Below, in pieces: positions 8,911-64,000 of a stretch of 64,000 bases of DNA. Within the stretch, counting starts at the first letter, position 1. The number at the start of each line of letters is the position of its first letter. The position numbers and the translations under genes were made by a program. Location: assembly GCA_037447605.1 (NCBI GenBank), contig CM074805.1:806001-870000 (forward strand). Direction: 5' to 3'. Origin of the DNA: Zygnema circumcarinatum SAG 698-1b (lineage: Eukaryota; Plantae; Zygnematophyceae). The notes beneath the pieces were generated by a model. That model worked only from the letters and a program-made list of their open reading frames with translations, searched no databases and was not told the DNA's origin.

Positions 8911-9153
8911 NNNNNNNNNNNNNNNNNNNNNNNNNNNNNNNNNNNNNNNNNNNNNNNNNNNNNNNNNNNNNNNNNNNNNNNNNNNNNNNNNNNNNNNNNN
9001 NNNNNNNNNNNNNNNNNNNNNNNNNNNNNNNNNNNNNNNNNNNNNNNNNNNNNNNNNNNNNNNNNNNNNNNNNNNNNNNNNNNNNNNNNNNNNNNNNNNN
9101 NNNNNNNNNNNNNNNNNNNNNNNNNNNNNNNNNNNNNNNNNNNNNNNNNNNNN
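8911..9153. other. Assembly gap (243 N); further 10-N joins at 609, 8391, 9505, 11119, 12072, 13916, 15714, 45074
   Basis: Directly visible. Confidence 1.
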
Positions 9154-12410: not shown

Positions 12411-12760
12411 CGTGCCCAAGGGAGGCTGCAAAAGAGGTAAGGGAAAACAAGCGGCCGGTTTTGCGGCCGTGCCCAACTACAGCGTCTGGGGTGAAGAAAG
12501 TAACCCCGTCTGGCCTAAAAAGAGCTGAAATGCCTAAAATCAGGATGGAGGCTACTGAAAACAGATTCTTCGCGAGGCCATCCACCAGGTAGACGTCATC
12601 GATGATGAAGCGCTGGCCGTCAATTAGAGTGGAAACCTGGCCGACATGCGTGGCAGTCAAGGAGCGGTTATCCCCTAAGAAAATGGTCATGGGGAGAGGG
12701 AGGGGAGAGAGCCGAGAGAACCAGTCACGACGAAAAGTTAGATGATGGGAGGCACCCGAG
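12411..12760 (-). pseudogene. Copia-1 aspartic protease region
   Basis: WLIDSGASHHLT, DVYLVDGLAKNLFSV, GRLFSL. Confidence 0.9.
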
Positions 12761-13122
12761 TCAATAAGCCAAGTGGAGTCAGGGAGAGAAGGGTCATACC
12801 CAAAAGGGTCCGCGGCCAGAAAGGCGTGACCGAACTCGGGAGCACCATAGACGACACCCGGGGTGGGAGGCGGGCCGGCCGGGGGGGGGAAGCCGGGGTG
12901 AAGAGAGGGGGTGTACGCGTGGGCGGCAAGGGCGACCTGGGCGGAAGGGAACGGAGGGAGGGGTGGCTACGAAGCTGCACGGCTGTGTTCGCCGGGGACC
13001 AATCGCAGGGCTGGAATCAGGGCGCCGCTGATATTTACGCGCCAGCCGGCGGAGGTGGTAATGCGGATTTGCAAGGGGTAAAAGTCGGCGCTACTTCGCC
13101 GTGAGCGGGACAGCTTTGCCTT

Positions 13123-14568
13123 TTACGTGAGTCTCGCTCTCGTACCCACAAAAAAGAGGGCGCCGCAGACTTGGGCGGAGGACCAGATCCGCTGACGCCA
13201 TGGGAGGATCTCGAGGGGGGTGGAATCTTTTTCCTCCTCGTTCAAAAGAAGGTCGGTCAGATCAGCGACGGTTAGTGAGATCGAGGCAGCATCAATGGAC
13301 GAGATGAAGGACCGGAAAGAGTCGGGCAGCCCGCCTAAAAGATTACAGATGATCTCATCATCATGAACTACGCAATCAATGCTGCGAAGCCGTCTAGCAA
13401 AGGATTTGACGCGGTCAGTATATGTCAGCATGGTTTCAGAGGATTCCTTTACGCAGTTAGTGAAGGCACGCCGCAAACGGAGTTTGTGAGACCACTTCCG
13501 AGGTTCGTACGCATTGGTCAGAAGAGTCCAAGCGTCGTGGGAGCTGGTGGCGTCACGGACGTGTCCGATGAGACTGCGCTGAATGCCGAGTGTGATGCGG
13601 AGAAACGCCTTCTTGTCGCGTTTTGTCCAATCGGCGATCTCCTTCGCGCGTGCAGCCAAGGCGGCCGCGTCGGCGGTGGAGGGAAGTGGCAAAGGACAGG
13701 TCTCTAGACCAGTAACGACAGACCACAGATTCTCTTCCTCAAAAAGCTGCTGGCACTGAAACTTCCAGTCGTGCCAGTTTGTCCCATCAAATTTTTCAAG
13801 CGCATTTGAGGCATGAGTGGGCCCATAACCTATTGAAAAAGACGGAGTGGACATTGTACGATCAAAGTGAGGACAGAGAGAGTTGACACAAAAAGACAGA
13901 TGTGTGATTAACGTGNNNNNNNNNNTGGAGGGGGTGGAATCTTTTTCCTCCTCGTTCAAAAGAAGGTCGGTCAGATCAGCGACGGTTAGTGAGATCGAGG
14001 CAGCATCAATGGACGAGATGAAGGACCGGAAAGAGTCGGGCAGCCCGCCTAAAAGATTACAGATGATCTCATCATCATGAACTACGCAATCAATGCTGCG
14101 AAGCCGTCTAGCAAAGGATTTGACGCGGTCAGTATATGTCAGCATGGTTTCAGAGGATTCCTTTACGCAGTTAGTGAAGGCACGCCGCAAACGGAGTTTG
14201 TGAGACCACTTCCGAGGTTCGTACGCATTGGTCAGAAGAGTCCAAGCGTCGTGGGAGCTGGTGGCGTCACGGACGTGTCCGATGAGACTGCGCTGAATGC
14301 CGAGTGTGATGCGGAGAAACGCCTTCTTGTCGCGTTTTGTCCAATCGGCGATCTCCTTCGCGCGTGCAGCCAAGGCGGCCGCGTCGGCGGTGGAGGGAAG
14401 TGGCAAAGGACAGGTCTCTAGACCAGTAACGACAGACCACAGATTCTCTTCCTCAAAAAGCTGCTGGCACTGAAACTTCCAGTCGTGCCAGTTTGTCCCA
14501 TCAAATTTTTCAAGCGCATTTGAGGCATGAGTGGGCCCATAACCTATTGAAAAAGACGGAGTGGACAT
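13123..14568 (-). pseudogene. Copia-1 gag (DUF4219/UBN2-like); appears twice because of an assembly overlap
   Basis: EKFDGTNWHDWKFQ..QLFEEENLWSVVTG, WTKRDKKAF..I.LGI, AWTLL..AYE, LLGGLPDSFRSF. 13211-13915 duplicates 13927-14635 across a 10-N gap. Confidence 0.9.
14533..14544 (-). promoter_or_regulatory. Copia-type internal (half-tRNA-iMet) primer-binding site GGTTATGGGCCC
   Basis: Directly abuts the LTR end on the minus strand; same sequence as the start of the Drosophila copia PBS (recalled, not searched). Confidence 0.8.
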
Positions 14569-14859
14569 TGTACGATCAAAGTGAGGACAGAGAGAGTTGA
14601 CACAAAAAGACAGATGTGTGATTAACGTGGTAAAGTGTACAATGTCCTAATCTGTTTTATTTACATTGCGGCTAGAGCTACACAACAAAAAGAGCGTGAA
14701 ACTAACCTGAGCAAGGGCGGCCGGGTGTGAAGCACACAGACGCAAAGGTACAACTAAACTAACAGAAAAGTACAAGCTAAAAGCACAGCCAGGTGTAAGT
14801 ACACGTGGCTGGGAAAACGACAAAATAGTACGACAAAACTGAGTGTCGGATTCTCAACA
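14545..14859 (-). repeat. 5' LTR of copia-1 (315 bp)
   Basis: Minus strand TGTTGAG...TTTCAATA; followed by PBS, flanked by TSD. Confidence 0.9.
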
Positions 14860-43134: not shown

Positions 43135-43866
43135 TTCACAACCTAACCGAATCCGTACGCCACATAAAACACGCCGTCGTACGTACAAAGTGACACGTGG
43201 CAATGACAGAATAAGTACGCGATCTACCCCATTTTCGGCGCATTCGATCCAACGAAAAGCACAACCAGTAAGGACGCGCAACGTGGCAAAGTCAGACTCG
43301 CGGCAACTATACCCCATTTCTTTTCTTTTCTTTGAGGTTTAATACAATGTATAATACAGTATTAATACAGTATTTTACATTGTATAAAACCCAAACGCAA
43401 CTGTTAACACCCGTACAACCAGACATAGAGTCGTACGGAATTTATGTACCATATTTGTGTACGAAACTATACGGCCACACGTGTCACACGTGTGGCCCGT
43501 CACACGTGTTGAGGTGCTGGTTGGCCAATAATCAATCTCCGTTCAATTAGCGAGAAATCAAAAGAAAATACGTTAAATACATATAAAATACACTGTATTT
43601 GCGTTGCCGTAGGCAAAAGCTTTGCGGTCGTTTTGATCCGTACGACGGGTTCGATTATGTTGTCAAAGATTAATTTAATGAAAATGGGGTATAGTTGCCG
43701 CGAGTCTGACTTTGCCACGTTGCGCGTCCTTACTGGTTGTGCTTTTCGTTGGATCGAATGCGCCGAAAATGGGGTAGATCGCGTACTTATTCTGTCATTG
43801 CCACGTGTCACTTTGTATGTACGACGGCGTGTTTTATGTGGCGTACGGATTCGGTTAGGTTGTGAA
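43135..43866. repeat. 185-bp inverted repeat (arms 43135-43319 and 43682-43866, 1 mismatch), 362-bp spacer
   Basis: Arms compared base by base; identical ORF translations on opposite strands (43063-43317 minus and 43633-43872 plus). A diverged tandem copy of the right arm follows at ~43868-44020. Confidence 0.95.
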
Positions 43867-44167
43867 GGATGAATTTAATGAAATTGCGGTATAATTTCCG
43901 CGAGTCTGACGTTGCCACGTCGCGCGTTCTGATTGGTTGTGCGTTTCGTCGGATCGAATGCGTAGAAAATGGGGTATATCGCGTACTGATTTTGTCATTG
44001 CCACGCAAGTCTTTTCTATGCAACGACAGTTTTTGGCTTTGAATGTTTTACGGACGTATTGTTGTAAATAGGGTATTTGCGCAGAGTGTTTAAAGTGGCC
44101 ACGTNGTGCATTNCTATTTNTTANCACGNACGGNATCTGTTATACTNCNTNTCCAGTCAAAAATTGC

Positions 44168-44736
44168 CACCTTGNAAATGTAGTGTGTTTTTGAATGTCT
44201 GTTATCCAGTCAGGTGTTGCCACGTAGCCCTAAAATGGGAAATTAAAAACCACACACAACTGGGTGAAAACAGAATGAGGCTCATTCCTGTTTCGCAGTT
44301 TGTGTGGTTTTTAACAAAAATAAAAAATCAATCTAAATATTACAACATGAGCACGAACGGAATTAGTTATAATTCTTATCCAGTCAGAAATTGCCACGTT
44401 GGTACTGTAGTGTGTTTTTGGATGTCTGTTATCCAATCAGGTGTTGCCACGTAGCCCTAAAATGGGAAAAAAACCAAAAAAAAACCACACACAAACTGCG
44501 CCGACAGAATGTGGACACATTCTGTCTTGCAGTTTGTGTGTGGATAAAAAAAAAACACAATGAATCTAAATATTATTAACATGTGGGTCTCATGTTGTAT
44601 ATATTAGATTTTGTTTGTTTGTAAAAGTCACACACAAAAATACACACACACACAAACACACACACACACACACACACGCCCACACACACACTCACACACA
44701 CACACACACATTCACCCACACACACACACTCTCTCT

Positions 44737-44772
<36 letters not shown>

Positions 44773-44907
44773 TTCACACTCACAGAAAAAGAAAAAAAAA
44801 AACATAATCAATCTAAATATTACAACATGTGGCCTCATGTTGTATTTATTAGTTTGATTTTTTGTTTTTTTTTTTTTTGTTTGTAAAAGTCACACACGAA
44901 AATACTC

Positions 44908-44947
<40 letters not shown>

Positions 44948-44972
44948 TCACCCACACACACACACTCTCTCT

Positions 44973-45014
<42 letters not shown>

Positions 45015-45073
45015 TTCACACTCACAGAAAAAGAAAAAAAAAAACATAATCAATCTAAATATTACAACATGTG
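44168..45073. repeat. Two diverged ~230-bp tandem units (44168-44400, 44405-44600) followed by two ~250-bp (CA)n-rich units
   Basis: TGTAGTGTGTTTTTG.ATGTCTGTTATCCA.TCAGGTGTTGCCACGTAGCCCTAAAATGGGA twice; CA tracts with the shared tail CAGAAAAAGAAAAAAAAAAACATAATCAATCTAAATATTACAACATGTG twice. Confidence 0.88.
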
Positions 45074-46026
45074 NNNNNNNNNNAAGCGAGGCAACGCTGA
45101 AGGGCGACGGAAATACGTTGTCGATAAAAGGTAGCCAAGATCGCCGGAGGAGGGCTTCCGGGGCCGTGCATCTCGAAAGAGCGATGGGCGCACTGGCGAA
45201 GGAAGGTATCCAAACGGGTGTCAAGGCAGCCAAAAATACACTAATTACAGCCATTAATACACGCGTTTGATACATACGGATCTATAGTTGCGACAAAAAA
45301 TGATGACATCATCGAGGACCTCATTTGGGGTGTAAAGATTAGACTTCACAAGCTGAATCCAGAACGCGTACTCCGCTGACATAGCGATCCTGCAGAAGGG
45401 AAGTACCTTATTTCCGTAACTTTCGTTTTCGTAAGATTTTGTTGTCGGGCACCACTTTTACCGTACGTGTCGTACGGCATCTCGCTACAAGACAAACATT
45501 TTAGCTGCGTCGTGTGCACGGAAATGCGTGACGCCGCTCTACGGGGTTCCATGTGTCGCCACGACAGTTCCAGAAGCGTGCGCGGAGCGTCAACCAGTCG
45601 CGCTCCATGCTTACACGTGGGACGTTTTTTTTTTTTTTTACGGTATCCGTCAACCAATACTATACAGCCCTACAGCCAGCCATACAGGCCATAGAGCAGC
45701 CGGTGACCTTCGCGGCTGCTTCTAGGGGCTGCGTTGTTGGCGTAGCTTTTCGCTCCTACCTTCATTCTTTTGTGCTTAGGTCCTTTGCGACCAGTCCCTC
45801 GTGGTTCCTCATGCTGCTGTTGTCCATGTACTAATGATCGCCTTGCCATCGTGAGATCAATGCCACTTTCACTCCATGTACGGCGTACATTGTGTGGCAG
45901 TTAAATTTCCTCCGGTTGTAATTCGTGCATATGTATCCTAAGTGCTGCTCCACCTTTCCGCATGTTCACCTTTGCACTTTACACCTACTACCGTAAAACC
46001 GAACAGGTTGAGAAAACCACTCAACT

Positions 46027-47035
46027 TGTTAGTGTATGATAGTTAGCATGGTTTTGTTGGAACATTAGTTTTGTGTGTTTGTGTTGTGTGTTTCCTTGGC
46101 GGCGGTGCGCGCCTAAGTTAGTAGGCGGCGGTACGGACATTTGGTCGGTGGAAGAGGCGCGGCGCGGCGGAGTCAGAAGTGACGAGGCGCGACGCGACGA
46201 ATCGGAAAGTGACGTGGCGCGGACGCGGCCGCGGAGCGAATTGAAGATGTGGCGCGACGCGCGAATCTGCGCGCGAATCGGAAGTGACGCGGCGCGGCGT
46301 CAACCTTTGGATTGAACGATTCGGACTTGACGCGATGCGGCGTCAAAATGTCGGCGCGCGATTCATCATTGTACGGAGCGGCGTCAGATGTCGGTGGCGT
46401 GCGACGACGCGGAGTTTGACGCGTCATCAATCTTGGAGGCGGAGTCAGATCCTACGGCGCAAGACGTGGATTAGCTTAGAGGCCGAGTCGGATCTGACGG
46501 AGGAAACGTACGGGATCCGTGTGAGCCGACGAGGATCCGACGGCGCAGGATGAGGATCGGGATAGGGCCCTTGCGGGCCGCTAGCCGATGTTGTGAGCTT
46601 CGTTGTATGGTAGTGTCACGGATGTTGTGACATCGTATATAGTGTGTTGTTTTGTTTGGTTGATAATCTTTAACTTCTGGATCACCAGCGTAGCTATTGT
46701 AGACTCTGAGAAGCTGTTGCTCGTGTTGCTTAACACTACACTTGCTTGTGCTGCGAGGTAGTGGGCTTTTGAGTTTATTGGGCTAGTTGAGAGGGGGTCT
46801 CTCAATTGTGGTGTTAAGATCATTATTAAGGAGTTTTAGAGCCGAGAGCTTTCTCCTATCCTTTTCTCTCTGTTATTCCGCTGTGCATATTCTGAGAGGT
46901 TCACTCTGTGAGTAAAATGGGCTATGAGTGAATGTGAGAGTTTGGGAAATGTCATCATCGATTGGAACGCGAACTCCGATGGAAGGTGATGCGAGTGGAG
47001 AAGCCGGCAGCAGTGGAGGAGTCCCTCCACCAACA
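46027..47035 (+). repeat. 5' LTR of copia-2 (1009 bp)
   Basis: Near-identical to 51405-52411. Confidence 0.97.
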
Positions 47036-50000
47036 AGTGGTATCAGAGCTCATGGTGACGCGGAGGACCACGTCAAGTTCAGCATACCGGCGTTCGATGG
47101 GCAGGATTACAAGGCATGGAGATGGAGGTTGGTGCCTTTGCTTGTGGGCAAAGGGTTGCTTGGGTACGTTGATGGCAGCATCAAGGCGCCGGAGTTACCG
47201 GTTGGAGCCTCAGCGGAGCAGCAGTCGGAGCACGACGTGGCGCTCGCACGATGGAAGGCCAAGGACAACAAAGCCCTGACGCAGATTGTTATGAGCGTAA
47301 GAGGAAGTCCATCCTCTATGCTGTATGATCTGAAAACCTCTCATGCTATGTGGAAGTGTCTAGAGGAGATGTATGATGTGAAAGACAATGTGACTATAGT
47401 CAGTCTTTACACTCAGCTAGGCAAGATGAAGATGACTTCAGAGGAGAAACTAGAAGCTTATATGGTCAGATTTGATGCATTGATGGAGAGGTTCATAGCC
47501 TTAGGGAAACCGTTAGATGCAGACCATAAGATAAGCCAGTTTCTAGGGGGTTTGCCCGGGAGATTCGAAGTTTCAGTGGCAGCCTTGAGGACAGTTCTGA
47601 CCAATACCTCTATGACGCTTGAACAAGTTAAGCGTAGGATAAAGGAGGAGGATTCGATTCAGGATGTCGGCGGCCAAGAAGAGAAGGTGCTCGCGTTGCA
47701 CACTCGACCGAATCGAAGAGGAGGAGGCGCCCCGAAGTCAGCCCGAGGAGAACGCTCGAATGTGACATGCTTCACATGTGGCAAGACCGGCCACTACTCC
47801 AGCGACTGTTTCAAGAACAAAAGCAGTCCAGAGAGAAACAGAGAAACCAGTCATCCGGTAAGAAAGGCAGAGAAGGTGTCACCCACTTGTTCAAGTGCAA
47901 GAAGAGAGGTCACAAGAGTTCAGACTGCAAGGTAGCAGTTGAGAGCAACCTCATGTTGGCAGAGAATACTGAGCACGATTTTGTGGGAAGGATTCAGGCA
48001 GAGGACCTGAAGCGGCCGTGGCTGATTGACTCCGGCGCTTCCACGCATATGTGCGGAGACACATCGATGTTCTCCAAGCTCGACAACTTGGAGAAGGCTC
48101 GCTCAGTTCATTCAGCAACCGGTGAAGGAGTCACCGTGACGAGAGGTGGAGCCGTGAGGATGGTCCTCGGAGACGGCTCAGTCATCAATGAAGACGATGT
48201 TCAGGAGAAACTGCACATTGGTGATGTTCTTCACACCCCTGGCCTCATGCAGAATTTCATGTCTGTGAGCCAAGTGTGCAAGAAGGGATACAGTGTTCTG
48301 TTTGAGGAGAAGTCATGCGTGGCTATCCACTCAGAAACTGGGAGACAGCTGTTCAGGGGTTATGAGAGAGGAGGGCTGTATTATCTTGATTATAAGAGGG
48401 AGAATCATGAGGAGGTGAATGCAGTTTCAGAGAATGCCGTAGATGTATGGCATCGTAGACTTGGTCACTTACACCACAGAGGCATGAAGCTGTTGGCTGA
48501 GAGGGGGCTAGTCCGTGGGCTAGACCCGGGTGTAGTGGAGAAGGAGTTGGGGGTTTGCCGTGAATGTGTGGAGGGCAAGGCGCACAGGAGACCATTCGTG
48601 AAGAGTGGAGACGAGTCCTATCGAGCGCGAGAAAAGTTGGAATTGGTACATTCTGACTTGTGTGGCCCGGTTACACCGGCGACCAGTGGCGGAGCGAGGT
48701 ACTTCGTCACCTTCCTTGACGACTATTCGAGGAAGATTTGGATCACACTCCTGAAGAACAAGTCAGAGGCTTTCGGAGCCTTTCGAGACTGGCTGAACCA
48801 GGCGGAGACAGAATCAGGACAGAAGCTGAAGGCTTTGCGCTCAGACAATGGCGGCGAATTCAAATCGAAGGAGTTCGCGGCGTTTCTGAAGAACCGCGGT
48901 ATAAGGCATGAATTCTCAGCCCCCTATTCCCCACAGAGTAATGGAGCAGCTGAACGTGTGAATAGGACATTGGGGGACATGGCCAGGACCATGTTGATTG
49001 ATTCCCCCTTTCCGGCTTCCTTTTGGGGAGAAGCAGTTTCTACGGCTGCTTACATTAGGAACAGATGTCCGTCTTCTGTTCTGAAAGACCAGGTCCCTGA
49101 GCAGATGTGGAGTGGGAGGAAGCCCACAGTTTCCCACCTGAGGACCTTTGGCGCGCGATGCTGGGCTGCACTGCCCAAGGCGCGACAGAAGAAGAAGTTC
49201 GACCCCCGAGCCGTGGAGGGCTACGTGCTCGGCTACAACACCAGCAGCCGCACCTACAGGGTTTGGAACCCTCGACTGAAGGAAGTTCTCCAACACCAGA
49301 CATCACAGGCTGATCAGACAGGAGTGCTCACAGCCACCCACACTCTCACACCTCACCTCCGTCTAGGTCGACCTTGAGATCAAGATTGAGGAGCAGAAAC
49401 AGCTGGAGATAAGGGTGGGTGCTGTGTAGCTGTGCCAGCACGCCCAATGAAGGAGCTGAGTCAATTGGGGAGCCACAAGCTAGCCGGCCATGATGGCAGG
49501 ACGCGCGGAGGCGCATGTGAGGAGCCGGCAGCCAGGCCGGCAGACTGATTCCCCCTTCAGACCCACTCAGGTGCAGGTGAATCATGCAGACGATTCCGTT
49601 TTCACGCTGGGAGACTCCAGGGACTCGAAGCGGCCAGAGGCAGGCAATGTTAGCGAACATGCCCTCAGTGTTTTGTTCTATCACCCACCCGCAGATGTGC
49701 GAAGACAGTCCGAGGAGCAGCCAGACACGAGGCGACCAGCACCGGTCTCCGCCGACCAATCCTATCCAAGAGAGAGTGCCATCAGGTTCACTTGCACCTT
49801 GCTGGAGCTGCCCACCGTTTCATGATTACCGAGCCACAGACCTTTGAGGAGGGCCACGACGGAGTCGATGGCCACAAAGTGGCGAGCGCGACTTGACAGC
49901 GAATGGAGCACCCTGACGAGAACGGCAGCGTGGAGATTGGAGGGGGCTGCTTGTGAAGCAAGGCGAGCTATCGGTGCAAATGGGTCTTTGGAGTCAAGAG

Positions 50001-51385
50001 GAAGGTAGACGGAAGCCGTGGACAGGTACAAGGCGTGGTTAGTGGCGAAAGGATACGGCCAGCAGTATGGGATTGACTACATGGAGACGTTCGCTCCAGT
50101 GGTAAAGTTCAATTCCCTGAGAGCCTTGATTTCCATTGCAGCGGCTGAAGGAATGCACGTCCATCAATTGGACATCAAGACGGCATTTCTGTATGGTGAT
50201 CTCACGGAAGAGATTTACATGGAGCAGCCGGAGGGGAAGGTCGTCCCCGGGAAGGAGCACCTAGTCTGTCGACTGGTGAAGAGCCTGTACGGCTTGAAGC
50301 AGGCGCCGAGAGTGTGGACGAAAAGATTGACGATCTTTTGAGGAGGAATGACTTTGCTCGGTTTGAGACAGATCATTCAGTGTACCGTCAAGGAGAGGGG
50401 GCAGACATCATGTTCGTTGGGATCTATGTCGACGATCTCATCATGGTGAGCCTCTCCCTTGAAAGAATCAGATCTTTGAAGGAATTGCTTCAGGCAAATT
50501 TCAAAATGTCAGATCTGGGAGAGGCGCAGTATCTGCTGGGAATGCAGCTGAAGAGGGGGCAGGATGGAAGCTTGTTTCTATGTCAAAGGAAGGATGCTTC
50601 AAGAGGGCTGCCCATTCTGATGCATGCCAGCCGAGTTCCAGCTCACTGAGATCGGCACTAGGCTTTCGAAAGAGATGTCACCTTCGCCGCATGCGAACAC
50701 AAAAGATGTTTGGAGTGCCATAGAGATCTGCTATCCTGGCAAGTCAATGTACTCAGATGATCGGAACGCGCCCGGACCTGGGCGAACGGTGAGCTCGGCC
50801 AGCTGATTCATGGAGAATCCGGGTCTGGAGCATTGGGAAGCCGTGAAGAGGATTTTCAGATATGTGAAGGGGACGCTCGATTACGGAATCAGGTATGAGA
50901 GGGGGCCAACCAGAGTGATTGGCTATACAGACTCAGATTGGGGAGGAGATGTCGATACGTCACGCTCGACTTCGGGTTTCGTTTACCTGAATGGAGGAGG
51001 AGCGATTTCGTGGAGTTCCAAGTTGCAGGACTCGGTGGCGTTATCGAGCACGGAGGGCGAGTACATGGGTGCTTGTCATGCTTCGAAGGAAGGAGTGTGG
51101 TTCATGCAGTTCTTTGAAGAATGCAAGAGGGACCAACGACCGATTACCTTGTTTACCGACAATCAATCGTCGATTGCCCTGGTGGGAAACCCTGTGTTCC
51201 ACAAGAGGACCAAGCACATTCGGGTGCAGTACCATTATGTACGGGAGTTGGTCGAGGAGGGCTTGATTGAGGTGAAGTTCGTAGGCACCAAGGAGCAGGC
51301 CGCAGATATGCTAACAAAGGGAGTTAGTGGGGAAACACTATTAGTCAACGGGAGGTTGATTGGGCTGGGGCCCGCGCAAAACTAG
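46949..51385 (+). pseudogene. Copia-2 gag-pol (gag with two CCHC knuckles, PR, IN, RT, RH), frameshifted
   Basis: FDGQDYKAWRW, CFTCGKTGHYSSDC, second knuckle split by a 1-nt loss at ~47890, WLIDSGASTHM, WHRRLGH, LVHSDLCGP, LRSDNGGEF, NGAAERVNRT, LDIKTAFLYG, IYVDDL, YTDSDWGG, DNQSSI...FHKRTKHI, QAADMLTK. Confidence 0.95.
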
Positions 51386-51404
51386 AAGTTCCAAAGAGGG
51401 GGAT

Positions 51405-52411
51405 TGTTAGTGTATGATAGTTAGCATGTTTTGTTGGAACATTAGTTTTGTGTGTTTGTGTTGTGTGTTTCCTTGGCGGCGGTGCGCGCCTAAGTTAGTA
51501 GGCGGCGGTACGGACATTTGGTCGGTGGAAGAGGCGCGGCGCGGCGGAGTCAGAAGTGACGAGGCGCGACGCGACGAATCGGAAAGTGACGTGGCGCGGA
51601 CGCGGCCGCGGAGCGAATTGAAGATGTGGCGCGACGCGCGAATCTGCGCGCGAATCGGAAGTGACGCGGCGCGGCGTCAACCTTTGGATTGAACGATTCG
51701 GACTTGACGCGATGCGGCGTCAAAATGTCGGCGCGCGATTCATCATTGTACGGAGCGGCGTCAGATGTCGGTGGCGTGCGACGACGCGGAGTTTGACGCG
51801 TCATCAATCTTGGAGGCGGGGTCAGATCCTACGGCGCAAGACGTGGATTAGCTTAGAGGCCGAGTCGGATCTGACGGAGGAAACGTACGGGATCCGTGTG
51901 AGCCGACGAGGATCCGACGGCGCAGGATGAGGATCGGGATAGGGCCCTTGCGGGCCGCTAGCCGATGTTGTGAGCTTCGTTGTATGGTAGTGTCACGGAT
52001 GTTGTGACATAGTATATAGTGTGTTGTTTTGTTTGGTTGTTTATCTTAACTTCTGGATCACCAGCGTAGCTATTGTAGACTCTGAGAAGCTGTTGCTCGT
52101 GTTGCTTAACACTACACTTGCTTGTGCTGCGAGGTAGTGGGCTTTTGAGTTTATTGGGCTAGTTGAGAGGGGGTCTCTCAATTGTGGTGTTAAGATCATT
52201 ATTAAGGAGTTTTAGAGCCGAGAGCTTTCTCCTATCCTTTTCTCTCTGTTATTCCGCTGTGCATATTCTGAGAGGTTCACTCTGTGAGTAAAATGGGCTA
52301 TGAGTGAATGTGAGAGTTTGGGAAATGTCATCATCGATTGGAACGCGAACTCCGATGGAAGGTGATGCGAGTGGAGAAGCCGGCAGCAGTGGAGGAGTCC
52401 CTCCACCAACA
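51405..52411 (+). repeat. 3' LTR of copia-2 (1007 bp)
   Basis: Preceded by PPT, followed by TSD. Confidence 0.97.
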
Positions 52412-52415
52412 CAAC

Positions 52416-55400
52416 TCTCTCCCCATTTCGTCCTCACTCCTGTCTTTTTTTTTTTTATAGAGTCAAGCTTTATGAACGGAATTTTGGTTTTGTTTGCTTC
52501 ATGAACGTCTTGAAGTACTTTTTTCTGGAGATATTACAGAAGCAATCACGACTCTGCATCCAGCGAAGACCTTCCACAAGTTCTTCCTGAAACCATTGTC
52601 CAGTTCACACATGTTATTGTCTTTGATCTTTCACCTTTGACAGCAGCTTTGCTTACGGGGACTGATGCCCGCGGTTGCTCGCTGTTCGTTCCACGTCTGT
52701 GCTGCACATCCTATTGTTACATGGTCAATCAGAAGACAATTGCGCGCTGCTTCTGCCTGTTTCTCCCTCCACCTCTATCGCTAGCTTTCTCGTTCAAAAT
52801 CGTCTTATCCCCATAGCCCCCGCCCCCCACCCAAAACTTCGCTGCCCCGGGCTCGTTCTGCCCCTTCCCTGTTCCCCACTGCGTCTCTCCCTCGCCATTT
52901 AGTCACCCGCCATTTGTCTCTTTACTGTTCTACCCATTGTGCCACTCCAAGCTCCTCTCTTCCTGCTTCCCTCTCGCACACAAGGCCTTCTGCGGGCGAA
53001 CAGGCCCATTTCCAATCCAGTCCCCTAAACATGTTTTACGCAGCTTACATAGTTGCCCTAAAATCTGATACTAAGTTGTGCCATGATACAACACCCTGCG
53101 GTATCTTCCTGTACAATGGAGGCGACTTTACAAGCGAAAAAAAATTGTTGATAGCCTGAATCTCAGATTCTGCAAGAGATTGGAAAGGAACTCCGGGTGG
53201 TCTTCAATGTGCGATTCAGTTTTCTCCCTTAGTAGTTCGCTGCCTCCCTATTAGATTTGCCGTTCATTGTTTCAAAAATCGGTCCTGCACCCCTCCCTTC
53301 AAGTTCAGGGTACTAGTGGTTTTGAGCACTTCAGAAGAGTTGAGGATCACAAGTACCACTGTAACTACATGAAGCCCATCGTCTCAATAGACTGCCTAAA
53401 CAAAACAAAACAAAACACAGTCCTTATTTTTCACATGAAAAAAAGAGAGATAGTTGGTCGAGTGGGGTATGCTTAACGGACGTAATGCAGCAAAATCATT
53501 AAGTCAGGGACCCACCTTACACACAGTAAAAGGCGGATAAATGTTTCTAGAAATAACAGAAACTCGATGTTTGTTAACTTACTCTGAAGAAGCCTTTTCA
53601 AACCATCTCACTGGAAGCGATAAGCCGATACGACCCCAATAGAACTTCAATGTGGGAGAGTCGGCAGCATCGCGTAGAATGGAGGTAATAGAAACCCAGA
53701 TCAGCGCCTGCGTGGAAAAGTTGAAGACTGGTTTATAACTAGAAAACAGTAACAAATGGAGTAAGAGTATAGAAACATGCTATGGGTTGCTCCATGTCGT
53801 GCACCTTCCCCCCTCCTCTCTTTGCCCTCCCCGTCCCCCTCCCCCTCGCCCTCCTCCTCCAATGAATTTGGTGCAAAGTGTCACATCACGATGGATCAAC
53901 TCGTTTTTTGCTGCTTGAACTATCTCTAATCCTCCAGTTAAGGAAAGGAAAAAGCCATTTGAAACCAGCTAGTGAGGCAAAGTATTGATTAAGCAAAAGC
54001 CTCTTGAAGCCATTCTGGACCTTTTTGGCCTTGACTCCTGTCAAAGAGGTGATTTGGAGATCCTTTATCTTCCCAGTAAGTAAAGTATCGTAAAACACTC
54101 GCTTTGCTCCAGGCTCCCCTTCTCCAAATGTTACGTAAGTCTGTTCCCATAGGTAACACTCAAACTCGCCTTCGTCGTTCATTTCAAAGCCTGTTCACGA
54201 ATGCTCAGTGCCCCAGACGCTACGTATCAGCAAGAAAAACTCTCGAATTTCAAGTTCCTTCAACGACTGGACATTCCAGAAATGCGATGCTGCGAGTGAA
54301 AGAGGCTGTTCTACCAGGATGACGTAATCGTTCAGGAAAATCACGAAATTCTGAATGATCGAGATCATCTGATGGACTTGGCTGACACTTAGAATCCTCA
54401 AATGCATCATCGTGAGAAGCAAACCGTCATCGTCTGTCGCTTTTCCGCATATTCATAGAATTTCATTGACCAAACTGTTGACTCGCTTCTTTCCAATGTT
54501 CTCCTGCGCATGTAAGACTTGCAGCAAGCATACAAAACCATGCAATTCGTTCATGTTTCCGCACCTTTTACGCCCGTCCTAAGCAACTCTCGGTGGTTAA
54601 AAGTGCATTTGCTTCGGAGAACGGACCCTTAACTTCTCGGGAATGAGGCCTGGCGGCAGATGCCTCTCTGTCAGCGCACGGGAGGCGGCGGTCCTCGGCC
54701 ATTCCTTGGCCGGCGAGAGCAGAGAGAGTTACAGCAGGCCGACGATGACAGGAGGGAGGGCAACGCCCGACCTCCAAGACTACCATCAGGAAAACGGTTC
54801 CATGTCATAAATCGTTCGCCAGTTCAACTGGAGCGGGACAGGCCTCGATTTTGGCTTCTCACAAAAAAAAAAAAAAAAACTTTCGAAACCAGTTTCTCAA
54901 AAAAAAAAACCTCCCATTTGTGAACACGATTCATTTTGAGAAATGAGGAAATGACATTGTGAATTCTTTTCTCAACACAATATTTGGGGAGAACCAATGG
55001 AACATTGAACAATCAATTAGCATTCGTGTTCAATTTGCGTCTTCCGCAGGTCCACCAATCAACAATGAGATTTTAGCGGATCGCAAAGTGCATGGACCCG
55101 TCGGTCCGTACAGAAGTTGTTGATCGGCTCGCGGGAAGAGTCGTACGGAAAAAATGAGGCCGGTTTTTTTTTTTTTTGGTTAACCGGATCCCTCGAATCG
55201 CACGGAACTCAACGTGACTAAAATTGGACTCCACACGTGCGACCGAACACATCGAGTCTTTAAACTTTTTCCTTAAAACCTTTCGCCTTCCTAAATCGAA
55301 CAAGTTTCGACCTGGATTGTTCAAAATTCAACCCTATATTCAATAAGATTGAGAATTGAGAAATTAAGGAATATCGTTTCTCAACTCCTCAACCTGTTCG

Positions 55401-58400
55401 GTTTTACGGTTTAGATCAAGCCGCTACAGAAACTGCTCCAGCGCTTTCACGAGGGAGCGAGGGACGCCCTTGTTGGCGAACGTGCGCGCAAGCCCTGTGC
55501 AATGTGCGTGCAATTCCCTCTATGTGAATGCTGTAAACAACTTGCATGCGATTTGTACTTCGCAACATGGAAGTCCCCTCTGCCTGAGGCTGGCCAAGCG
55601 CGGGTGCAAAGGCATCGGCGGCACCTCGCCTCGGGCCTTCCGAGCCGCCGGCGCTGCCCTCTGGTCGGGTCCGTTGCAGCGCCAACAGCGACGGCCGCTG
55701 CGTGTAACTGTAACTGGACTACGTGCGAATATAAGAGCATAGAACGCTGGATTTGAAACTGTTCAGGAGCATGGAGCACTGCATACGTACCGTGGCTTCC
55801 GACGGTCTAGAGTTTGTAACTGTGTAACTGTTCTTTGTGGTTGCGTGTGCCAATACAGAACCATACGACGCGAAACGCAAGCATCGCGTCACGGTCAGCT
55901 CTTCCCCATTTGTGCCCCTAATTGCCGCATCAAATGAACAAATGAAAACATCAAAAATGTGAAATACGGTCCACGAACCGAAATATCATAAATACTGTCA
56001 GTCCTCCCGATATTGAACCGTATTGAGATATCCCTGACGGAGGGTCAATGTCACGCTCCATGGAAAACTTCCAGCGCCTGTCCCGGGCCAGCTGAACCGG
56101 AAAACGATGTATCACATGGAACCGTTTTCCTGCTGTCTTGGAGGGCGGGCGCTACCCTCCCTCCTGTCCTCGTCGCGCTCGCGTGCCCCTTCTCTGCTCT
56201 CGGCGGCCATGGAATGGCCGAGGACCGCCGCCTCCCGTGCGCTGACAGAGAGGTATCTGACCGCCGCCTCCCGGGCGCTGACAGAGAGGCATCTGCCGCC
56301 AGGCCTCATTCCCGAGACAGTTCAGGGTCTGTTCTCCGAAACAAATGCACTTTTAAGCACAGAGAGTTGCTTGGGACGGGCGTAAAACATGCGGAAATAT
56401 GGACGAATTGCATGGTTTTGTATGCTTGTTGCGAGTCTTACATGCGCAGGAAAACATTGGAAAGAACCGAGTCAACAGTTTGGTCAATGAAATTCTATGA
56501 CTATGCGGAAAAGCTACAGATGATGACGGCTTGCTCCTCACGATGATGCATTTGAGGATTCTGATTGTCAGCCAAGTCCATCAGATGATCTCGATCACTC
56601 AGGATTTCGTGATTTTCCTGAACGATTACATCATCCTGTAGAACAGCTTCTTTCACTCGCAGCATCGCATTTCTGGAATGTCCAGTCGTTGGAGGAACTT
56701 GAAATTCGAGAGTTTTTCTTGCTGATACGTGGCGCCTGGGACACTGAGCATTCATGAACAGATTTTGGAATGGACGACGAAGGCAAGTTTGACTGTATTT
56801 TAAGTGGGAATACTTACGTAACATTTGGAGAAAGGGAACCTGGAGCAACGCAAGTGTGTTACGAAGATGTCCTTAGTGGGACGATAAAGGATCTCGAAAT
56901 CACCTCGTTGAAAGGAGTCAAAGTCAAAAAGGTTCGGCTTGGCTTCAAGAGGCTTTTGCTTAATCAACACTTTGTCTCACTGGATGGTTTCAAATGGATT
57001 TTTTATTTCCTTAACTGGACGATTAGAGGTAACCCAGGCACCAAAAGCGAGTTTGCATCGTGACGTGACACTTTGCACCACATTTATTGGAGGGGGAGAA
57101 GGAGGGGAACGGGGAGGGCAAAGAGAAACGGCGGGAAGGTGCACAACATAAAGCAAACCATAGCATGTCTTCATACTTCTAATCCATTTGTACTATTTTC
57201 TAGTATAAACAAGTCGTCATCTTTTCCACGCAGGCGCTGACATGGGTTACTGTTACCTCCATTATACGCGATGCTGCCGACTCTCCCACATTGACGTACT
57301 CTTTGGACCGTAACGGCTTACCGTTTCTAGTGAGATGTTGTGGTCATAACGGCTTCTCGCTTCCTGTGAGCTGGTGTGAACGTGGAGAAATTCAGCGCGT
57401 GGACTGTTCAACCTTCCAGGATATTTTTGGATGTGCACCGGTTCGTGGTCTCTTTGATGGGGAAAACTGGCGGAGCGTGTGCACCGACGATGTGCTGACA
57501 GTGATGCATCTGCCGCTAGGCCTCCTTCCCGGTTCTGTCATAGGTCTGTTTCCGCAGAAAAATGCACTTCCAAGCGCAGAGAGTTGCTTGAGTCGGGCGT
57601 ATAAGATGCGAAATTATGAAAGAAAACATGATCTTGCATGCTTGCGAGTCTTATAAGCGCAAAAAAATACTGGAAAGGAAAGAGTCAATAGTTTGGCCAA
57701 TCAAAATCTATGACTATGCGAGAAGTTACATTAGTGTCAGTTTGCTCCTCACGATGATGCATTTGAGGTTTCTGATTGTCAGCCAAGTCCATCAGATGAT
57801 CTAGACCACTCAGAATTCCGTGATTTCCGTGAGCGGTTTCATCATCTTGACAGAACAACTGTTTGCACTTGCCGCAATGCATTCCTAAAATGTCCAATCG
57901 TTAAAGGAACTTGAAATTCGAAAGTTTTTTATGCTGATACGTGGCGCCTGGGGCACTGAGCATTCATGAACAGGCTTTCAAATGAACGACGAAGGCGAGT
58001 TTGAATGTAACCTATGGGAACAGACTTACGTAACATTTGGAGAAGGGGAGCCTGGAGCAAAGCGAGTGTCTTACGATACTTTACTTACTGGGACGATAAA
58101 GGATCTCCAAATCACCTCTTTGACAGGAGTCAAGGTCAAAAAGGTTCGGCTTGGCTTCAAGAGGCTTTCGCTTAATCAACATTTTGTCTCACTACATGGT
58201 TTCTAATGGATTTTTTCTTTCCTTAACTGACGATTAGAGATAACCCAGGCACCAAAAACGAGTTTGCATCGTGATGTGACACTTTGTACCACATTCATTG
58301 GAGGGGGGGGGGAAGGGGGAGGGGAACGGGGAGGGGAACGGGGAGGGCAAAGAGAAGAGGGGGGAAGGTGCACCACATGGAGCAACCCATAGCATGTTTC

Positions 58401-59753
58401 TATACTCCTACTCCATTTGTACTATGTTCTAGTTATAAACAAGTCTTCAACTTTTCCACGCAGGCGCTGATCTGGGTTTCTGTTACCTCCATTATACGCG
58501 ATGCTGCCGACTCTCCCACATTGACGTTCTCTTTTGGTCGTAAGGGCTTTTCGCTTCCAGTGAGATGGTTTGAAAAGGCTTCTTCAGAGTAAGTTAACAA
58601 ACATCGAATTTCTGTTATTTCTAGAGACATTTATCCGTCTTTTACTATGTGTAAGTTGGGTCCCTGACTTCATGATTTTGTTGCATTACGTCCATGAAGC
58701 ATACCCCACTCGACCAACTATCTCTCTTTTTCCATGTGGAAAATAAGGACTGTATTTTGATTGTTTTGTTTAGGCAGTCTATTGAGACGATGGGCTTCGT
58801 GTAGTTACAGTGGTACTTGTGATCCTCAACTCTTCTGAAGTGCTCAAAACCACTAGTACCCTGAACTTGAAGGGAGGGGTGCAGGACCGATTTTTGAAAC
58901 AATGAACGGCAATTCTAATAGGGAGGCAGCGAACTACTAAGGGTGAAAATTGAATGTACATCGAAGAGCACCCCGAGTTCCTTTCCAATCTCTTGCAGAA
59001 TTTGAGATTCAGGCTATCAACATTTTTTTTTCGCTTGTATGGTCGCCTCCATTGTACAGGGAAGATACCGCAGGGTGTTGTGTCATGGCACAACTCAGTA
59101 TTAGATGTGAGGGCAACTATGTAAGCTGCGTAAAACATGTTTATGGGACTGGATTGGAAATGGGCCTGTTCGCCCGCAGAAGGCCTTGTGTGCGAGAGGG
59201 GAGCTGGAAGAGAGGAGCTTGGAGTGGCACAATGGGTAGAACAGTAAAGAGACAAATGGCGGGTGACTAAATGGCGAGGGAGAGAAGAAGTAGGGAACAG
59301 GGAAGGGGCAGAACGAGCCCGGGGCAGCGAAGTTTTGGGTGGGGGGCGGGGGCTATGGGGATAAGACGATTTTGAACGAGAAAGCTAGCGATAGAGGTGG
59401 AGGGAGAAACAGGCAGAAGCAGCGCGCAATTGTCTTCTGATTGACCATGTAACAATAGGATGTGCAGCACAGACGTGGAACGAACAGCGAGCAACCGCGG
59501 GCATCAGTCCCCGTAAGCAAAGCTGCTGTCAAAGGTGAAAGATCAAAGACAATAACATGTGTGAACTGGACAATGGTTTCAGGAAGAACTTGTGGAAGGT
59601 CTTCGCTGGATGCAGAGTCGTGATTGCTTCTGTAATATCTCCAGAAAAAAGTACTTCAAGACGTTCATGAAGCAAACAAAACCAAAATTCCGTTCATAAA
59701 GCTTGACTCTATAAAAAAAAAAAAGACAGGAGTGAGGACGAAATGGGGAGAGA
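52416..59753. repeat. Large inverted repeat: left arm 52416-54845; right-side copies 56079-57330 (partial) and ~57500-59753
   Basis: Mirror ORFs (52675+/59267-, 52914+/58779-, 53267+/58645-, 53886-/56770+/57982+). Outer ~1.2 kb nearly identical; inner part visibly more diverged. Confidence 0.95.
56200..59699 (+). pseudogene. Degenerate multi-exon coding-like locus (two tandem partial copies here, one inverted copy at 52470-54750); weakly LRR/FBD-like
   Basis: Conserved frames QSLEELEIREFF and TIKDLEITSLKG…FKRLLLNQ; exon-like TTTCAG|EELVEGLRWMQSRDCFCNISRKKYFKTFMKQTKPKFRS* at 59583-59699. In-frame stops present. Confidence 0.35.
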
Positions 59754-61012
59754 AAGACGTTGTACGGTGTATTAGGTTGATTGTATTATCACCTACTGTA
59801 CAGTAAGAGGAGAGCTCAAGGTGAGCGCACAAGTGGATGAACGGGAATCTAACAAACTGAGGCATCAGAAAGCAGCCAGATTAAACGTGTTGTTGTAGAG
59901 TCCTCGTTTCCATTCCATCAACAACACGAGCATCCTCCCATTTCTAAAAAAACTCCGTTTCAGATTCAAAAAAGTGACAGCGATTGTAGAACAGCAGACC
60001 TTGAAAGAAAGTGTACAAGACAAGGCCTGATTCAAGGCAACTCAAGGATCTCAACATGCGTCTAAATTGCCAGTCCCACATCTACGGATGTACCACCACC
60101 CAATTTTGGACCTGGCTCCTCGCCTTTCACGAGGGCATCCTCGACTACCGGCTGCACTTCATCCACAACCTTGTCCTTCCCTTCTTCCAAGAGCCCGCCT
60201 GCCTTCGTTTCTACGCAACTTCCTGACTCCAGAACTTTGATTTCATCCAAATCCCTTACATCATCTCCAAGATCAAAGTCGGGTTGAGGTGAAACCACGC
60301 ACCCATCCCTTCCAGCTTCTTCCAACCCATCCACCGGCTCTGGACCCTCCGGATTAACGGGTATCCCAATTGTGCCTTCAGCAACTGCCCTAACCGCCCT
60401 ACTAGCAAGGTCAAAGGCTTCCTGCACCCATCCAAGTCAGCGCATCCACATTCTTGTCAAAGGTCGGAACAACAATAATAACAAAAATAGCAGATGAAAA
60501 AATATCTCGTCACTAGCCACGCGAAACATTAGGTCAACTTCTGCACAAAATTGAGACTTGAGAGCTCCATCTTTCCAAGCAACATGACTGACGATCATTT
60601 CCTGAAAGCTTCAGAGGAAGAAGTAATGAGGAAAGGACTACTTCCTTCGCACGAACTATAAAGGAAACTCCCTCAAAGCTCGCACAGAAATATAAACACA
60701 CCTTTATAGATTCCACAGGGAGAGCAGAATCTTCCAGACCAGCGTCTTCCAAGCGTGGTGACACGGTAGAAAAGTAAAGGCCCGAATTGTACTCTGCCAT
60801 TGCTGTCGTCAGCCTGCAAGACACTTCCAATAGAATGACTTAAAAGCATAGAAGCTGATAAAAGAAATTATTACCACCACCAAACTACACAAGAAACACT
60901 CGCATGAGCAGAACCATACATCAAACCCGGAGACTCCGAGCTGGTAGCGTAGCTCACCTCCCCTACCCTCCCACTACATCTCCTGCCCTTCACCTCCCAA
61001 AAATCCACCTTT

Positions 61013-61207
61013 TCAACTCTTTTGCGGAAGCTCGAAACGCTTGCGGAACTTCGCCACCTGTCCGACGGTCTCCGAGCGCTTCCCAGGATCCCTCACGAAG
61101 TTGGGCTTCTCCACCTTGAACACCTTTCCGCAGAAGACCTTCACCACACGGCCATGGGGGGAGACGAGGGTGAGCAGCTGCAGGACGGGATGGATACCCT
61201 TCTTCAT
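61013..61207 (-). CDS. bL31m: Mitochondrial ribosomal protein bL31m, plant type, 64 aa, single exon
   Basis: MKKGIHP.LQ.L.LVSPHGR…VGQVAKFRKRF matches the plant bL31m pattern (MKKGIHP…GQIAKFKRRF). Confidence 0.85.
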   Translation of the reverse strand: MKKGIHPVLQLLTLVSPHGRVVKVFCGKVFKVEKPNFVRDPGKRSETVGQVAKFRKRFELPQKS

Positions 61208-62317
61208 CCCCACCAGCTGCGCAGAGAGCCTTCCCCCACCCTCCCCCCTTTCCCAGCTCTCTCCACCGCTCCCTCCAATGAAGAAAATTAGGGTTAGGGC
61301 TGCGACGCATATTGTACCCGGAATCCAGTGTATCGGTCAATATATCCAGTATATCGATCAGTATATACAGGGTGTGTCGAATTTTAGTATGGCTGGTATC
61401 GGGATATCGTCTCAGTGTCAGCTCCTGCCTTGCCCTCTATTTAGACACTAGGGGGCATTAGAGTTGACAAAATTTGACGGAAAGGTACTCCTCTGCAGGG
61501 GGATCGCGATGTGACCGGAGTACTGTACTCGTTCTGGAGGAAAACATACGGTTTGTTAAGTCTGAGACACCATACTTGTGGGTGGCAGAAAAATGTCAAA
61601 GGATGGGGCATGGATCTCACGATGGCGATGATGCCATCACATGGGCATGGCCAACATCAGCATGGGGAACCACGAGGAACAAACCGGTCAAAACAAAAAA
61701 AAACTCAAAGCGGAAAACCACGCCCAGGCTCAACAAAACGTAAGCCCTCCCTCGAAGCAGCCGCGAAGGTCACATCGCGCGTAGGGAGGGCGGGGAGGGG
61801 AGGGAGGGAGCGGCGGAAGGCCAGTAACAACCGCGGCTTCACGCCGAAGGAGCGGAGAAGCGAGGAGGAGGGCACCGCTGAAGGGCGACGGAAATGCGCT
61901 ATCGATAAAGAGTAGCGAGGATCGCCGGAGGAGGAGAGGAGGGCTTCCGGGGCCGTGCATCCATACTTTTAGAAAGCATTGTATTGCAGGTGATGTTTAA
62001 TTTTATGGCAGACACTTAAACAGGTCAAGCAGCATTGTTGGAAAACGTCGAGAGTTCAGACATAACAGCAAGATTCCAGACTATTGTAGGATGGTGACAG
62101 TTTCGGAGAAAACAGCGAACTCGGGGAATAAAACATTTTCAAAAGGAGTTGTACAGATTGATCTACCCCTCTATACAGAAAGAAATCCTACTCTGTCCCG
62201 AACATGCTGAAAAAGTTCTGTAATTACAACTGTACAGTAGATTTTCCAAGAGTTTAGAAACAAACTCAATATGCCTATCTAATTTAAGAGGGGACTCTGG
62301 CTGGAATCCGAAAAACT

Positions 62318-63931
62318 TCAAAAGAAAGTTGCTGTTTGATACCAAATGCTGACGATGTCCGTCACCGTCTCGTCCGTGAAAGACAGTCGATAGTTCGCCG
62401 GCTTAAATACAAAGTCTGCAGGAAATGAATCGTTGTCTCTGCAGTAAGCTTGAGCACCTGTATACCCCACTTCCGCTTGAACAGGAAGAGGCTTTGGGGC
62501 ATCAATGTCATCCGAGAACCCTAAATATCCTATATCATACTCTAAAGCATAAGCCAGAGTGTAGGAATATCCTGCAGACCCCGCACTGTATGCCATTGGA
62601 AGATTAGGGAAACCCCCAACAGCGACAACTCGAACATTCATAATCTCTTGAGCAAGATATGCGAATAGGGAACAGGTTGAGTAGCATCCTCCATTTGAAA
62701 GAATGAGAATATTGGAAGGATCGAAGAGAGCGGAAGTGTCCGCCAACGGTAGGATGAGCTCGTCAATTCCAAGGGGGCTCGGAAGACGGTCAGGGAAGGA
62801 ATAGAGGGAGGAGTATCGAGACGTGGTGTTTCCAAATGTGAGATTTACGGTTGGGAAAAAGTACTCTGAGGATGATGTGAACATTTCATCGTTCGGATAA
62901 GGGTATGTATCAAACGCCCAGTTGTATTGGCTAGGGTTCGAGAGCCAGTACTTGGTCTCCTCCATGAGCGCGTTGGATTTGGCGACCATTTTTCTAATGA
63001 GAGGTGTGGCAGGGTTCTGAATGGGATACTGCGGAAATACGACTCCCGGAAACAAGAACTCGAGGAGAACATATGAGAGGTAAGCATATCCTCCTCCGTT
63101 ATCTTGCAAGTCGATGATCAGCCGCTCTGCTCCGTTGGTCCTGTCGATGATAAGGAAACAGCAATGTCATTAGTGAATCCTTTGACAAAACTAAGGCGCA
63201 AGTTGAATGCCAATACCATACATGGTTTCATCCAAGAGTTTGCAAAATTATTCACTCAAATGCATGGCGTGTATGCACCGTGCACTTATTTGAAAGCGTT
63301 TTGCGTAACTCACAATAGGCTGCTGACACCGTTGTACACATCACTCTGCCATTCAGAGTAGTCTCCGCCGGATCCCTCAAAGTCGGGGAAAACCATAACT
63401 CCCGTAATCTTATCTCCAAGAAGGAATGTCTGTCGGTACCACACCAAGCCCCACAGCCACACCCGCAATGAGTCCGTCTCTGTTTATAAAAATAACAACT
63501 TTACTGCTGCAGTTACTGCAATTCTCACTCATGGTTGATTGTAGATTGCTATCAACCACACGTTTCCGGCTACATACCGAGACATAAGAGTCCACCAAGA
63601 CGGACACCCCCGAGGATGGAGATGCGATGCCACCAATGCGCTGCTGAAGCTTCAATCCATCGCGCTCTTTCTTCTTTGGGTTTTCTTTTCCGGTTGAAAC
63701 AGTCTCCTCCACGGCATGCTTCATATGAGCCTTGTCTTTGTGGGGCATCTTCGCCATCACGTGCTGCTTCTTCACAGTCGCTTTCGTAGCCGTTACGTCT
63801 AAACTTGATGACTCGTAGCAGTAGGTTGACCAATACTCCTCCCCGGATTGGAAGGTCGACCCATAGAACAAGACAAGCAATGGCACCACAATTGTTTCCT
63901 GTGTGGTGCTACCAACCCTGAAAGCACACAC
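62318..63931 (-). CDS. Peptidase S41-like protein (fungal ustP/CPAF-like type), 3' part; gene continues beyond the window. Exons include 63140-62318 and 63430-63314
   Basis: RLIIDLQDNGGG; ILILSNGGCYSTCSLF (catalytic Ser motif); VRVVAVGG.PN.PM.YS.G; TFLLGDKITGVMVFPDF; FQSGEEYWSTYC. Confidence 0.8.
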
Positions 63932-64000
63932 ACACGTTCACTTCTATCAGCATCTTCACACACCGCACACAAAATGATGAAATGTAAGGCTCTGATGACC

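Follow-up and report, generated by a model that had tools for sequence, protein, structure and literature searches.

A perfect inverted repeat pair around an inverted, contracted copy of the neighbouring DUF538-like locus in Zygnema circumcarinatum: a candidate transposon relic with a nested Ty1/copia element

The locus described here lies in a stretch of 64,000 nucleotides of the streptophyte alga Zygnema circumcarinatum SAG 698-1b (GenBank assembly GCA_037447605.1, contig CM074805.1, positions 806,001 to 870,000 of the forward strand), which was analyzed as a whole and is referred to below as the window; all positions are counted from its first letter. The locus comprises a pair of perfect, short inverted repeats, a complete Ty1/copia retrotransposon nested close to the left repeat, a block of duplicated DNA between the repeats (arm A), and, beyond the right repeat, the DNA of which arm A is an inverted copy (arm B), with frames matching the DUF538 protein family (Table 1). 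Tentatively, we regard the interval 45990-55410 as the relic of a non-autonomous transposon bounded by terminal inverted repeats (TIRs), the interior of which may have been filled by repair synthesis from its neighbour.

Table 1. Positions of the elements of the locus within the window (LTR, long terminal repeat; TSD, target-site duplication; PBS, primer-binding site; PPT, polypurine tract)
Feature	Positions	Strand	Remarks
Candidate TIR-L, left repeat copy	45990-46012	+	Repeat search, direct reading
Short stretch from left repeat to copia, 14 bp	46013-46026	+	TTGAGAAA at 46008-46015, overlapping the repeat; left TSD CAACT at 46022-46026
Complete Ty1/copia LTR retrotransposon	46027-52411	+	LTRs, TSD, PBS, PPT, Pfam domains
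Right TSD copy CAACT	52412-52416	+	Arm A starts at its final base
Arm A (cargo), inverted copy of arm B	52416-54845	-	One hybrid DUF538-like unit
461-bp identical run	52416-52876 = 59293-59753	.	Adjoins copia and junction
AT-rich unduplicated DNA within right repeat, 542 bp	54846-55387	.	Five copies of TTGAGAAA/TTTCTCAA in both orientations, four of CTCAAC
Candidate TIR-R, right repeat copy	55388-55410	-	Next bases TTAG, without a clean TA duplication
GC-richer unduplicated DNA from right repeat to donor, 665 bp	55411-56075	.	
Arm B (donor)	56076-59753	+	Two tandem DUF538-like units and ~1.2 kb of distal DNA

Read in reverse complement, arm A matches arm B. The original prediction, made from this sequence, had recognized the inverted copy, whereas it began the donor at 56079 instead of 56076 and placed it directly outside the right repeat, from which it is in fact separated, starting 666 bp past it. 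Within arm B, ~1.21 kb was duplicated in tandem long ago, and the two resulting units, B1 (~56277-57337) and B2 (~57494-58567), are 84% identical. In a three-way alignment of the units, the sites that distinguish B1 from B2 are B1-type in the proximal half of arm A and B2-type in its distal half, with one switch at ~54190-54230. Since arm A is a one-unit hybrid contraction of an already diverged two-unit template, the direction of copying can be read from the alignment: arm B is the donor and arm A the copy. The proposed inverted copy of neighbouring intron-containing DNA thus stands, but as a contraction of the donor rather than a straight copy. Arm B also carries small tandem arrays, at 56223-56300 (36-bp unit, 2.2 copies) and 58304-58347 (12-bp G-rich unit, 3.7 copies); these arrays account for most of the insertions and deletions between the arms, and arm A has one 36-bp unit fewer than B. 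Together with the spacer between them, the arms form a 7.3-kb foldback (52416-59753), which could give rise to a hairpin RNA if transcribed through.

Each of the three units possesses an open frame matching positions 22-77 in the profile of the plant family DUF538 (PF04398), with 24.1 bits in B1, 30.0 bits in B2 and 26.9 bits in arm A; the gathering score of the family is 25 bits, which B2 and A exceed and B1 narrowly misses. A second frame, ~310 bp downstream, gives a weak but collinear match to profile positions 76-112. The reference search took the DUF538-like exons singly and not as a joined spliced model. In arm B the exon-2-like frames lie at 56758-57060 and 57970-58203 and the exon-3-like frame at 58275-58589, while arm A has an exon-2-like frame at 53889-54194 and an exon-3-like frame at 53582-53779, both on the minus strand, with an intron of ~307 bp kept. 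The two matching frames are thus consecutive exons with an intron between them, and, because this intron is retained, arm A is a copy made at the DNA level. That the cargo contains an intron had been claimed before, and the occurrence of profile positions 22-77 and 76-112 in separate frames ~307 bp apart bears this out. The ratio of nonsynonymous to synonymous substitution rates among the copies is 0.75-1.25, that is, about 1, and the changes are spread evenly across the three codon positions; all copies evolve neutrally. A word search with the DUF538-like exon found no close protein. Probably, the locus is a decaying DUF538-like gene pair.

The outer boundaries of the interval are formed by the repeat pair, which was found by a repeat search and by direct reading and which shows no mismatch over 23 bp. 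The original prediction gave a perfect repeat of 22 bp; perfection holds, and the length grows by one extra A/T pair. With three or fewer mismatches allowed, no further copy of the repeat occurs in the 64-kb window, and none was obtained in 100 shuffles. To the left of the repeat pair stands TA (45989-45990 when the repeat is counted as 22 bp) and to its right TT, exactly the left-hand TA and imperfect right-hand duplication that had been described. A perfect repeat of this length, sharply delimited on its outer sides, would not be expected to arise by chance, and we infer that the pair marks the ends of a candidate transposon. A scan of the 22-mer against metagenomes gave no match, which is uninformative either way.

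The DNA between the repeats that belongs neither to the cargo nor to copia amounts to 602 bp and differs in several respects from its surroundings. The octamer TTGAGAAA, counted together with its complement, occurs eight times in the 64 kb, and six of these copies fall within the 602 bp: one lies across the inner end of the left repeat and five lie in 54893-55384, with none in 55411-56075. Elsewhere in the window, only tandem arrays yield 565-bp segments with an equal number of repeats of an 8-mer. TIR transposons typically carry scattered subterminal motifs that extend into the terminal repeat. The GC content rises from ~34-42% to ~59% at 55400-55410. The sharp perfect repeat, the strongly enriched octamer and the change in GC content at 55410 give the non-cargo DNA of the interval a transposon-like appearance. 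The left end also contains a small, snap-back-like hairpin, in which GTTGAG and CTCAAC are separated by 7 nt. A protein-family search of the AT-rich DNA at 54846-55387 gave no match. Scans with Rfam and for tRNAs also yielded nothing.

The retrotransposon nested in this interval has all the hallmarks of a Ty1/copia element. Its LTRs (46027-47035 and 51405-52411) differ by four substitutions and two one-base gaps over 1009 bp, its ends are TG and CA, and it is flanked by an exact 5-bp TSD; a tRNA-Met-type PBS is located at 47038-47049 and a PPT at ~51393-51404. Pfam matches to gag, integrase and RVT_2 occur in the order gag, integrase, reverse transcriptase. The gag open reading frame (ORF) spans 46928-47935 and the integrase ORF 47767-49377, with RVT_2 pieces at 50018-50649, so that pol is divided among several ORFs. 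Apart from this division, the element departs from other Ty1/copia elements only in its position, which is exactly on the cargo junction: 14 bp separate the element from the left repeat, and the homology between arms A and B ends at the T at 52416, the last base of the TSD. The same coincidence of copia with the boundary between element end and cargo had been reported, and it is confirmed to the base; likewise, removal of copia and one TSD leaves 3029-3031 bp, in agreement with the 3029-bp segment proposed.

Of 2415 aligned sites, 140 (5.8%) differ between arms A and B, in addition to insertions and deletions; 74 of the differences are transitions and 66 transversions, an ordinary ratio. This ratio rules out hypermutation resembling repeat-induced point mutation or methylation damage as a reason for arm A to look old. 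Divergence is uneven along the arms: two runs are identical, the 461-bp tract listed in Table 1 and a second one at 53257-53369, and elsewhere the divergence is 5-15%. Against a background of ~7%, a perfect run of 461 bp cannot be due to chance, which indicates recent arm-to-arm gene conversion or re-copying. Judged by the divergence of its LTRs (0.4-0.6%), copia is much younger than the duplication and approximately as young as this tract. The tract suggests that a break at or to the left of the junction was repaired from arm B and that the junction was perhaps reset after copia had arrived. An earlier argument for capture, namely that only ~36 bp of end sequence precede the cargo, keeps its observation and loses force: because the junction may have been reset, the present junction may postdate the original capture, and the short end says less about the latter.

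We tentatively favour a reading in which ~0.6 kb of the interval (45990-46026 and 54846-55410) would be the own DNA of the element, while most of its interior would have been replaced by a 2.4-kb inverted DNA copy of the DUF538-like gene or pseudogene pair located 0.67 kb to the right. A break in or at the element would have been repaired by synthesis-dependent strand annealing (SDSA), during which the growing strand would have switched template to the nearby arm B on the opposite strand, slipped between B1 and B2, thereby producing one hybrid B1/B2 unit, and then rejoined the element. Afterwards the arms would have diverged to ~6-7% with patches of gene conversion, and later still copia would have integrated at a point 14 bp inward of the left repeat. 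Repair synthesis of this kind is known to contract tandem repeats, and internal replacement of the Ac-to-Ds type is abortive gap repair at transposon-induced breaks. The repair-synthesis route is favoured because of the tandem contraction, because filler DNA from the repair of transposon breaks has been documented, in rice (PMC4423477), and because only two events are needed. Like these known fillers, the cargo would result from SDSA copying of nearby sequence at a break associated with a TIR element whose ends remain intact; unlike them, it would measure 2.4 kb (3.7 kb before contraction), whereas the fillers in rice excision footprints measure 1-123 bp (PMC4423477). As a reading of sequence, this scenario concerns the route by which the interior was filled and stops short of membership in a mobile family and of past movement of the composite.

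Several observations weigh against this reading. Within the window, neither a further copy of the 23-bp repeat nor a second copy of 54846-55410 (or of 54846-56075) was found, and protein-family searches detected no transposase relic or domain in the segment. None of the other TSDs of 2-9 bp around the repeat pair fits, the flanks being TA and TT without a clean duplication; the candidates tried and rejected include 3-bp TTA/TAA duplications, duplications of 4, 5, 8 and 9 bp, and shifted repeat boundaries. The assignment to Tc1/mariner in the original prediction could not be upheld. TA is present on one side only, although a single mutated base in an old insertion could account for this, and TA TSDs are found in 98-99% of the annotated Pack-Mariner elements (PMC8903248); moreover, the terminus (A)CCGTAAAACC does not match CTCCCTC, the terminal consensus of plant mariners (PMC4423477, Table 1). 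Finally, a copia landing at random in a 3-kb segment would agree to the base with the cargo junction with a probability of ~0.3%, a coincidence that is only loosely explained.

Among known systems, the Pack-TYPE elements are, along with filler repair at transposon breaks, the closest, and Pack-type members of the mariner, hAT, PIF and CACTA groups have been described (PMC8903248). As in Pack-MULE, Pack-CACTA, Pack-hAT, Pack-PIF and Pack-Mariner elements (PMC8903248; PMC13317346), short paired TIRs (here the 23-bp repeat) surround host genic DNA, namely DUF538-like exons with their intron (26.9 bits for DUF538 in the cargo), no transposase domain is present, and the copy is neutral or non-functional. 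The present interval differs from them in being a single copy in the window without a sign of mobility, in its unclean TSD with flanks TA and TT, and in the location of its donor only 0.67 kb away, the copy being inverted. It also differs in content, since the published capture route, in which two adjacent insertions are mobilized jointly, predicts native intervening DNA between the ends, whereas the DNA found here is inverted DNA from outside.

The main and a serious rival, although on balance rather unlikely, is a duplication that involved no transposon: a template switch of the FoSTeS/MMBIR type (fork stalling and template switching or microhomology-mediated break-induced replication) or of the polymerase-theta type would have copied B, inverted, to a site 1.2 kb upstream, and the left 23-mer would be a templated insertion from 55388-55410 followed by 13 bp of filler. 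Such an event is consistent with a left repeat of just 23 bp located 13 bp off the breakpoint, with a source for it at most 0.55 kb from the other breakpoint, with the snap-back-like hairpin at the left end, and with the lack of a TSD, of a family member in the window and of a transposase relic. It leaves unexplained why the TTGAGAAA domain at 54893-55384 is confined between the junction of arm A and the right repeat, why the motif overlaps the repeat itself, and why the GC step falls at 55410; in addition, no microhomology is visible at 45989/45990. Should the repeat pair not be a transposon, the locus would be nothing out of the ordinary: a decaying gene pair duplicated locally in inverted orientation, with gene conversion. 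Palindromes and segmental duplications of this local, inverted kind with conversion between the arms are indeed similar to what was found, with two inverted arms, a spacer of 1230 bp (54846-55410 and 55411-56075), a mosaic divergence from 0% to ~15% and long perfect tracts; the locus is unlike them in that the outer edge of one arm adjoins a 23-bp repeat, the partner of this repeat lies in the spacer, and copia sits on the edge. A genuine transposon could also have been a passive bystander, which seems improbable. The inverted paralogue A, being older, would then lie between the ends of two neighbouring insertions of the same family that lost their inner parts, or an unrelated duplication would have landed in a resident element. 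For Pack-CACTA and other Pack-type elements, an origin from two insertions is the model put forward in the literature (PMC8903248; PMC13317346), and under it the homology ends would be simple deletion endpoints, so that the left repeat could lie close to arm A without any special cause. However, it requires about five events versus about two and predicts a cargo of native intervening DNA, and no remnant of the lost element halves was found; in the version with a chance landing, a breakpoint 13 bp from the repeat would be a coincidence of ~5%.

The other explanations concern the nature of the arms rather than that of the repeats. If A and B were two insertions of one mobile element that carried DUF538-like DNA, their sharp homology edges on both sides would follow, but the arm ends lack terminal repeats and TSDs, only two copies exist, 1.2 kb apart, and A contracts the diverged tandem pair of B, which makes this origin very improbable. 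It is just as hard to sustain an assembly artefact, with the left arm or the join across copia misassembled. Elsewhere the scaffold is of draft quality, with tandem blocks of 100% identity beside gaps of ten Ns (N10) at 8.4-14.6 kb, as well as another gap at 45074-45083, and polishing could have produced the perfect 461-bp tract; on the other hand, runs of N are absent from 45084-64000, the arms differ at 140 sites and by insertions and deletions and are therefore distinct sequences, the matching 5-bp TSD on either side of copia argues for a correct join, and a 1.2-kb spacer is unlike foldback-read chimeras. The most remote of the explanations, an RNA-mediated retrocopy of an antisense B transcript, draws on an A17 run 17 bp past the end of arm A and on the poly-A runs at 54863-54879 and 54899-54909. 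The A run does not adjoin the homology, the DUF538-like intron is kept, and the candidate flanking duplication is not significant, its score being equalled by 24% of shuffles; on the last two grounds, this origin was rejected.

The capture of host gene fragments by cut-and-paste transposons is debated, with abortive gap repair and template switching on one side and mobilization by two neighbouring elements on the other, and the captured pieces nearly always lie far from their donors, so that the capture step is rarely visible. If the preferred repair-synthesis reading is true, a transposon shell with an inverted, contracted copy of a donor 0.67 kb away would be a direct footprint of that route, in a streptophyte alga rather than a crop. 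A more specific and unlikely version would see here a TIR capture frozen beside its donor: synthesis primed at the element end would have copied 3.7 kb in inverted orientation with contraction, so that a Pack-type element would have arisen in a single step, and the insertion of copia at the same junction would have triggered a second break repair that left the 461-bp tract. In that case, it would follow that a nested insertion is able to renew the junction of a capture.

To the left of the interval, the gap-free contig that bears the left repeat starts ~900 bp to the left of that repeat, after an N10 gap (45074-45083). The region 44100-45100, in which this gap lies, holds a satellite of ~230-245 bp with embedded (CA)n runs and single-base Ns at 44105-44175. 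A larger inverted duplication that reached into the left flank was rejected, since the similarities between 45084-45989 and 59754-62000 are short, non-collinear and in part due to a dispersed repeat also present at 1308-1364. This short repeat, ~79-80% identical among its copies, occurs at 45806-45862 in the left flank of the element, at 1308-1364, and at 61607-61677; separately, 45090-45172 resembles 61871-61961 in direct orientation. Farther to the left, a foldback-like repeat at 43135-44005 has arms of 185 bp (43135-43319 and 43682-43866) that are 99.5% complementary. There is a third, partial arm (43877-44005, 87%), the flank is poly-T/CTTTT, and no clear TSD was seen. The terminus of this repeat (43135-43866) agrees with the inner end of the 23-bp repeat at 11 of 12 bases, which, at z ~2.5 and with four comparisons, is marginal and was not used.

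The remaining observations concern more distant parts of the window. The region 8391-14629 contains 100% identical head-to-tail blocks across N10 gaps (10176-11118 = 11129-12071 and 13216-13915 = 13930-14629), and within it 8462-8910 is approximately equal to 9515-9963; these blocks lie in another copia-type element, on the minus strand; two gag stretches are present in its gag ORF (13123-14568). The identical blocks look like overlap or scaffolding artefacts and not like biology. On the other side of the locus, 1.3 kb past arm B, a single-exon ORF of 66 amino acids at 61013-61213 (minus strand), with the dispersed repeat copy at 61607-61677 in its upstream region, matches the whole bL31 profile (PF01197) with 23.7 bits, just under the cut-off, and is probably an organellar L31 gene.

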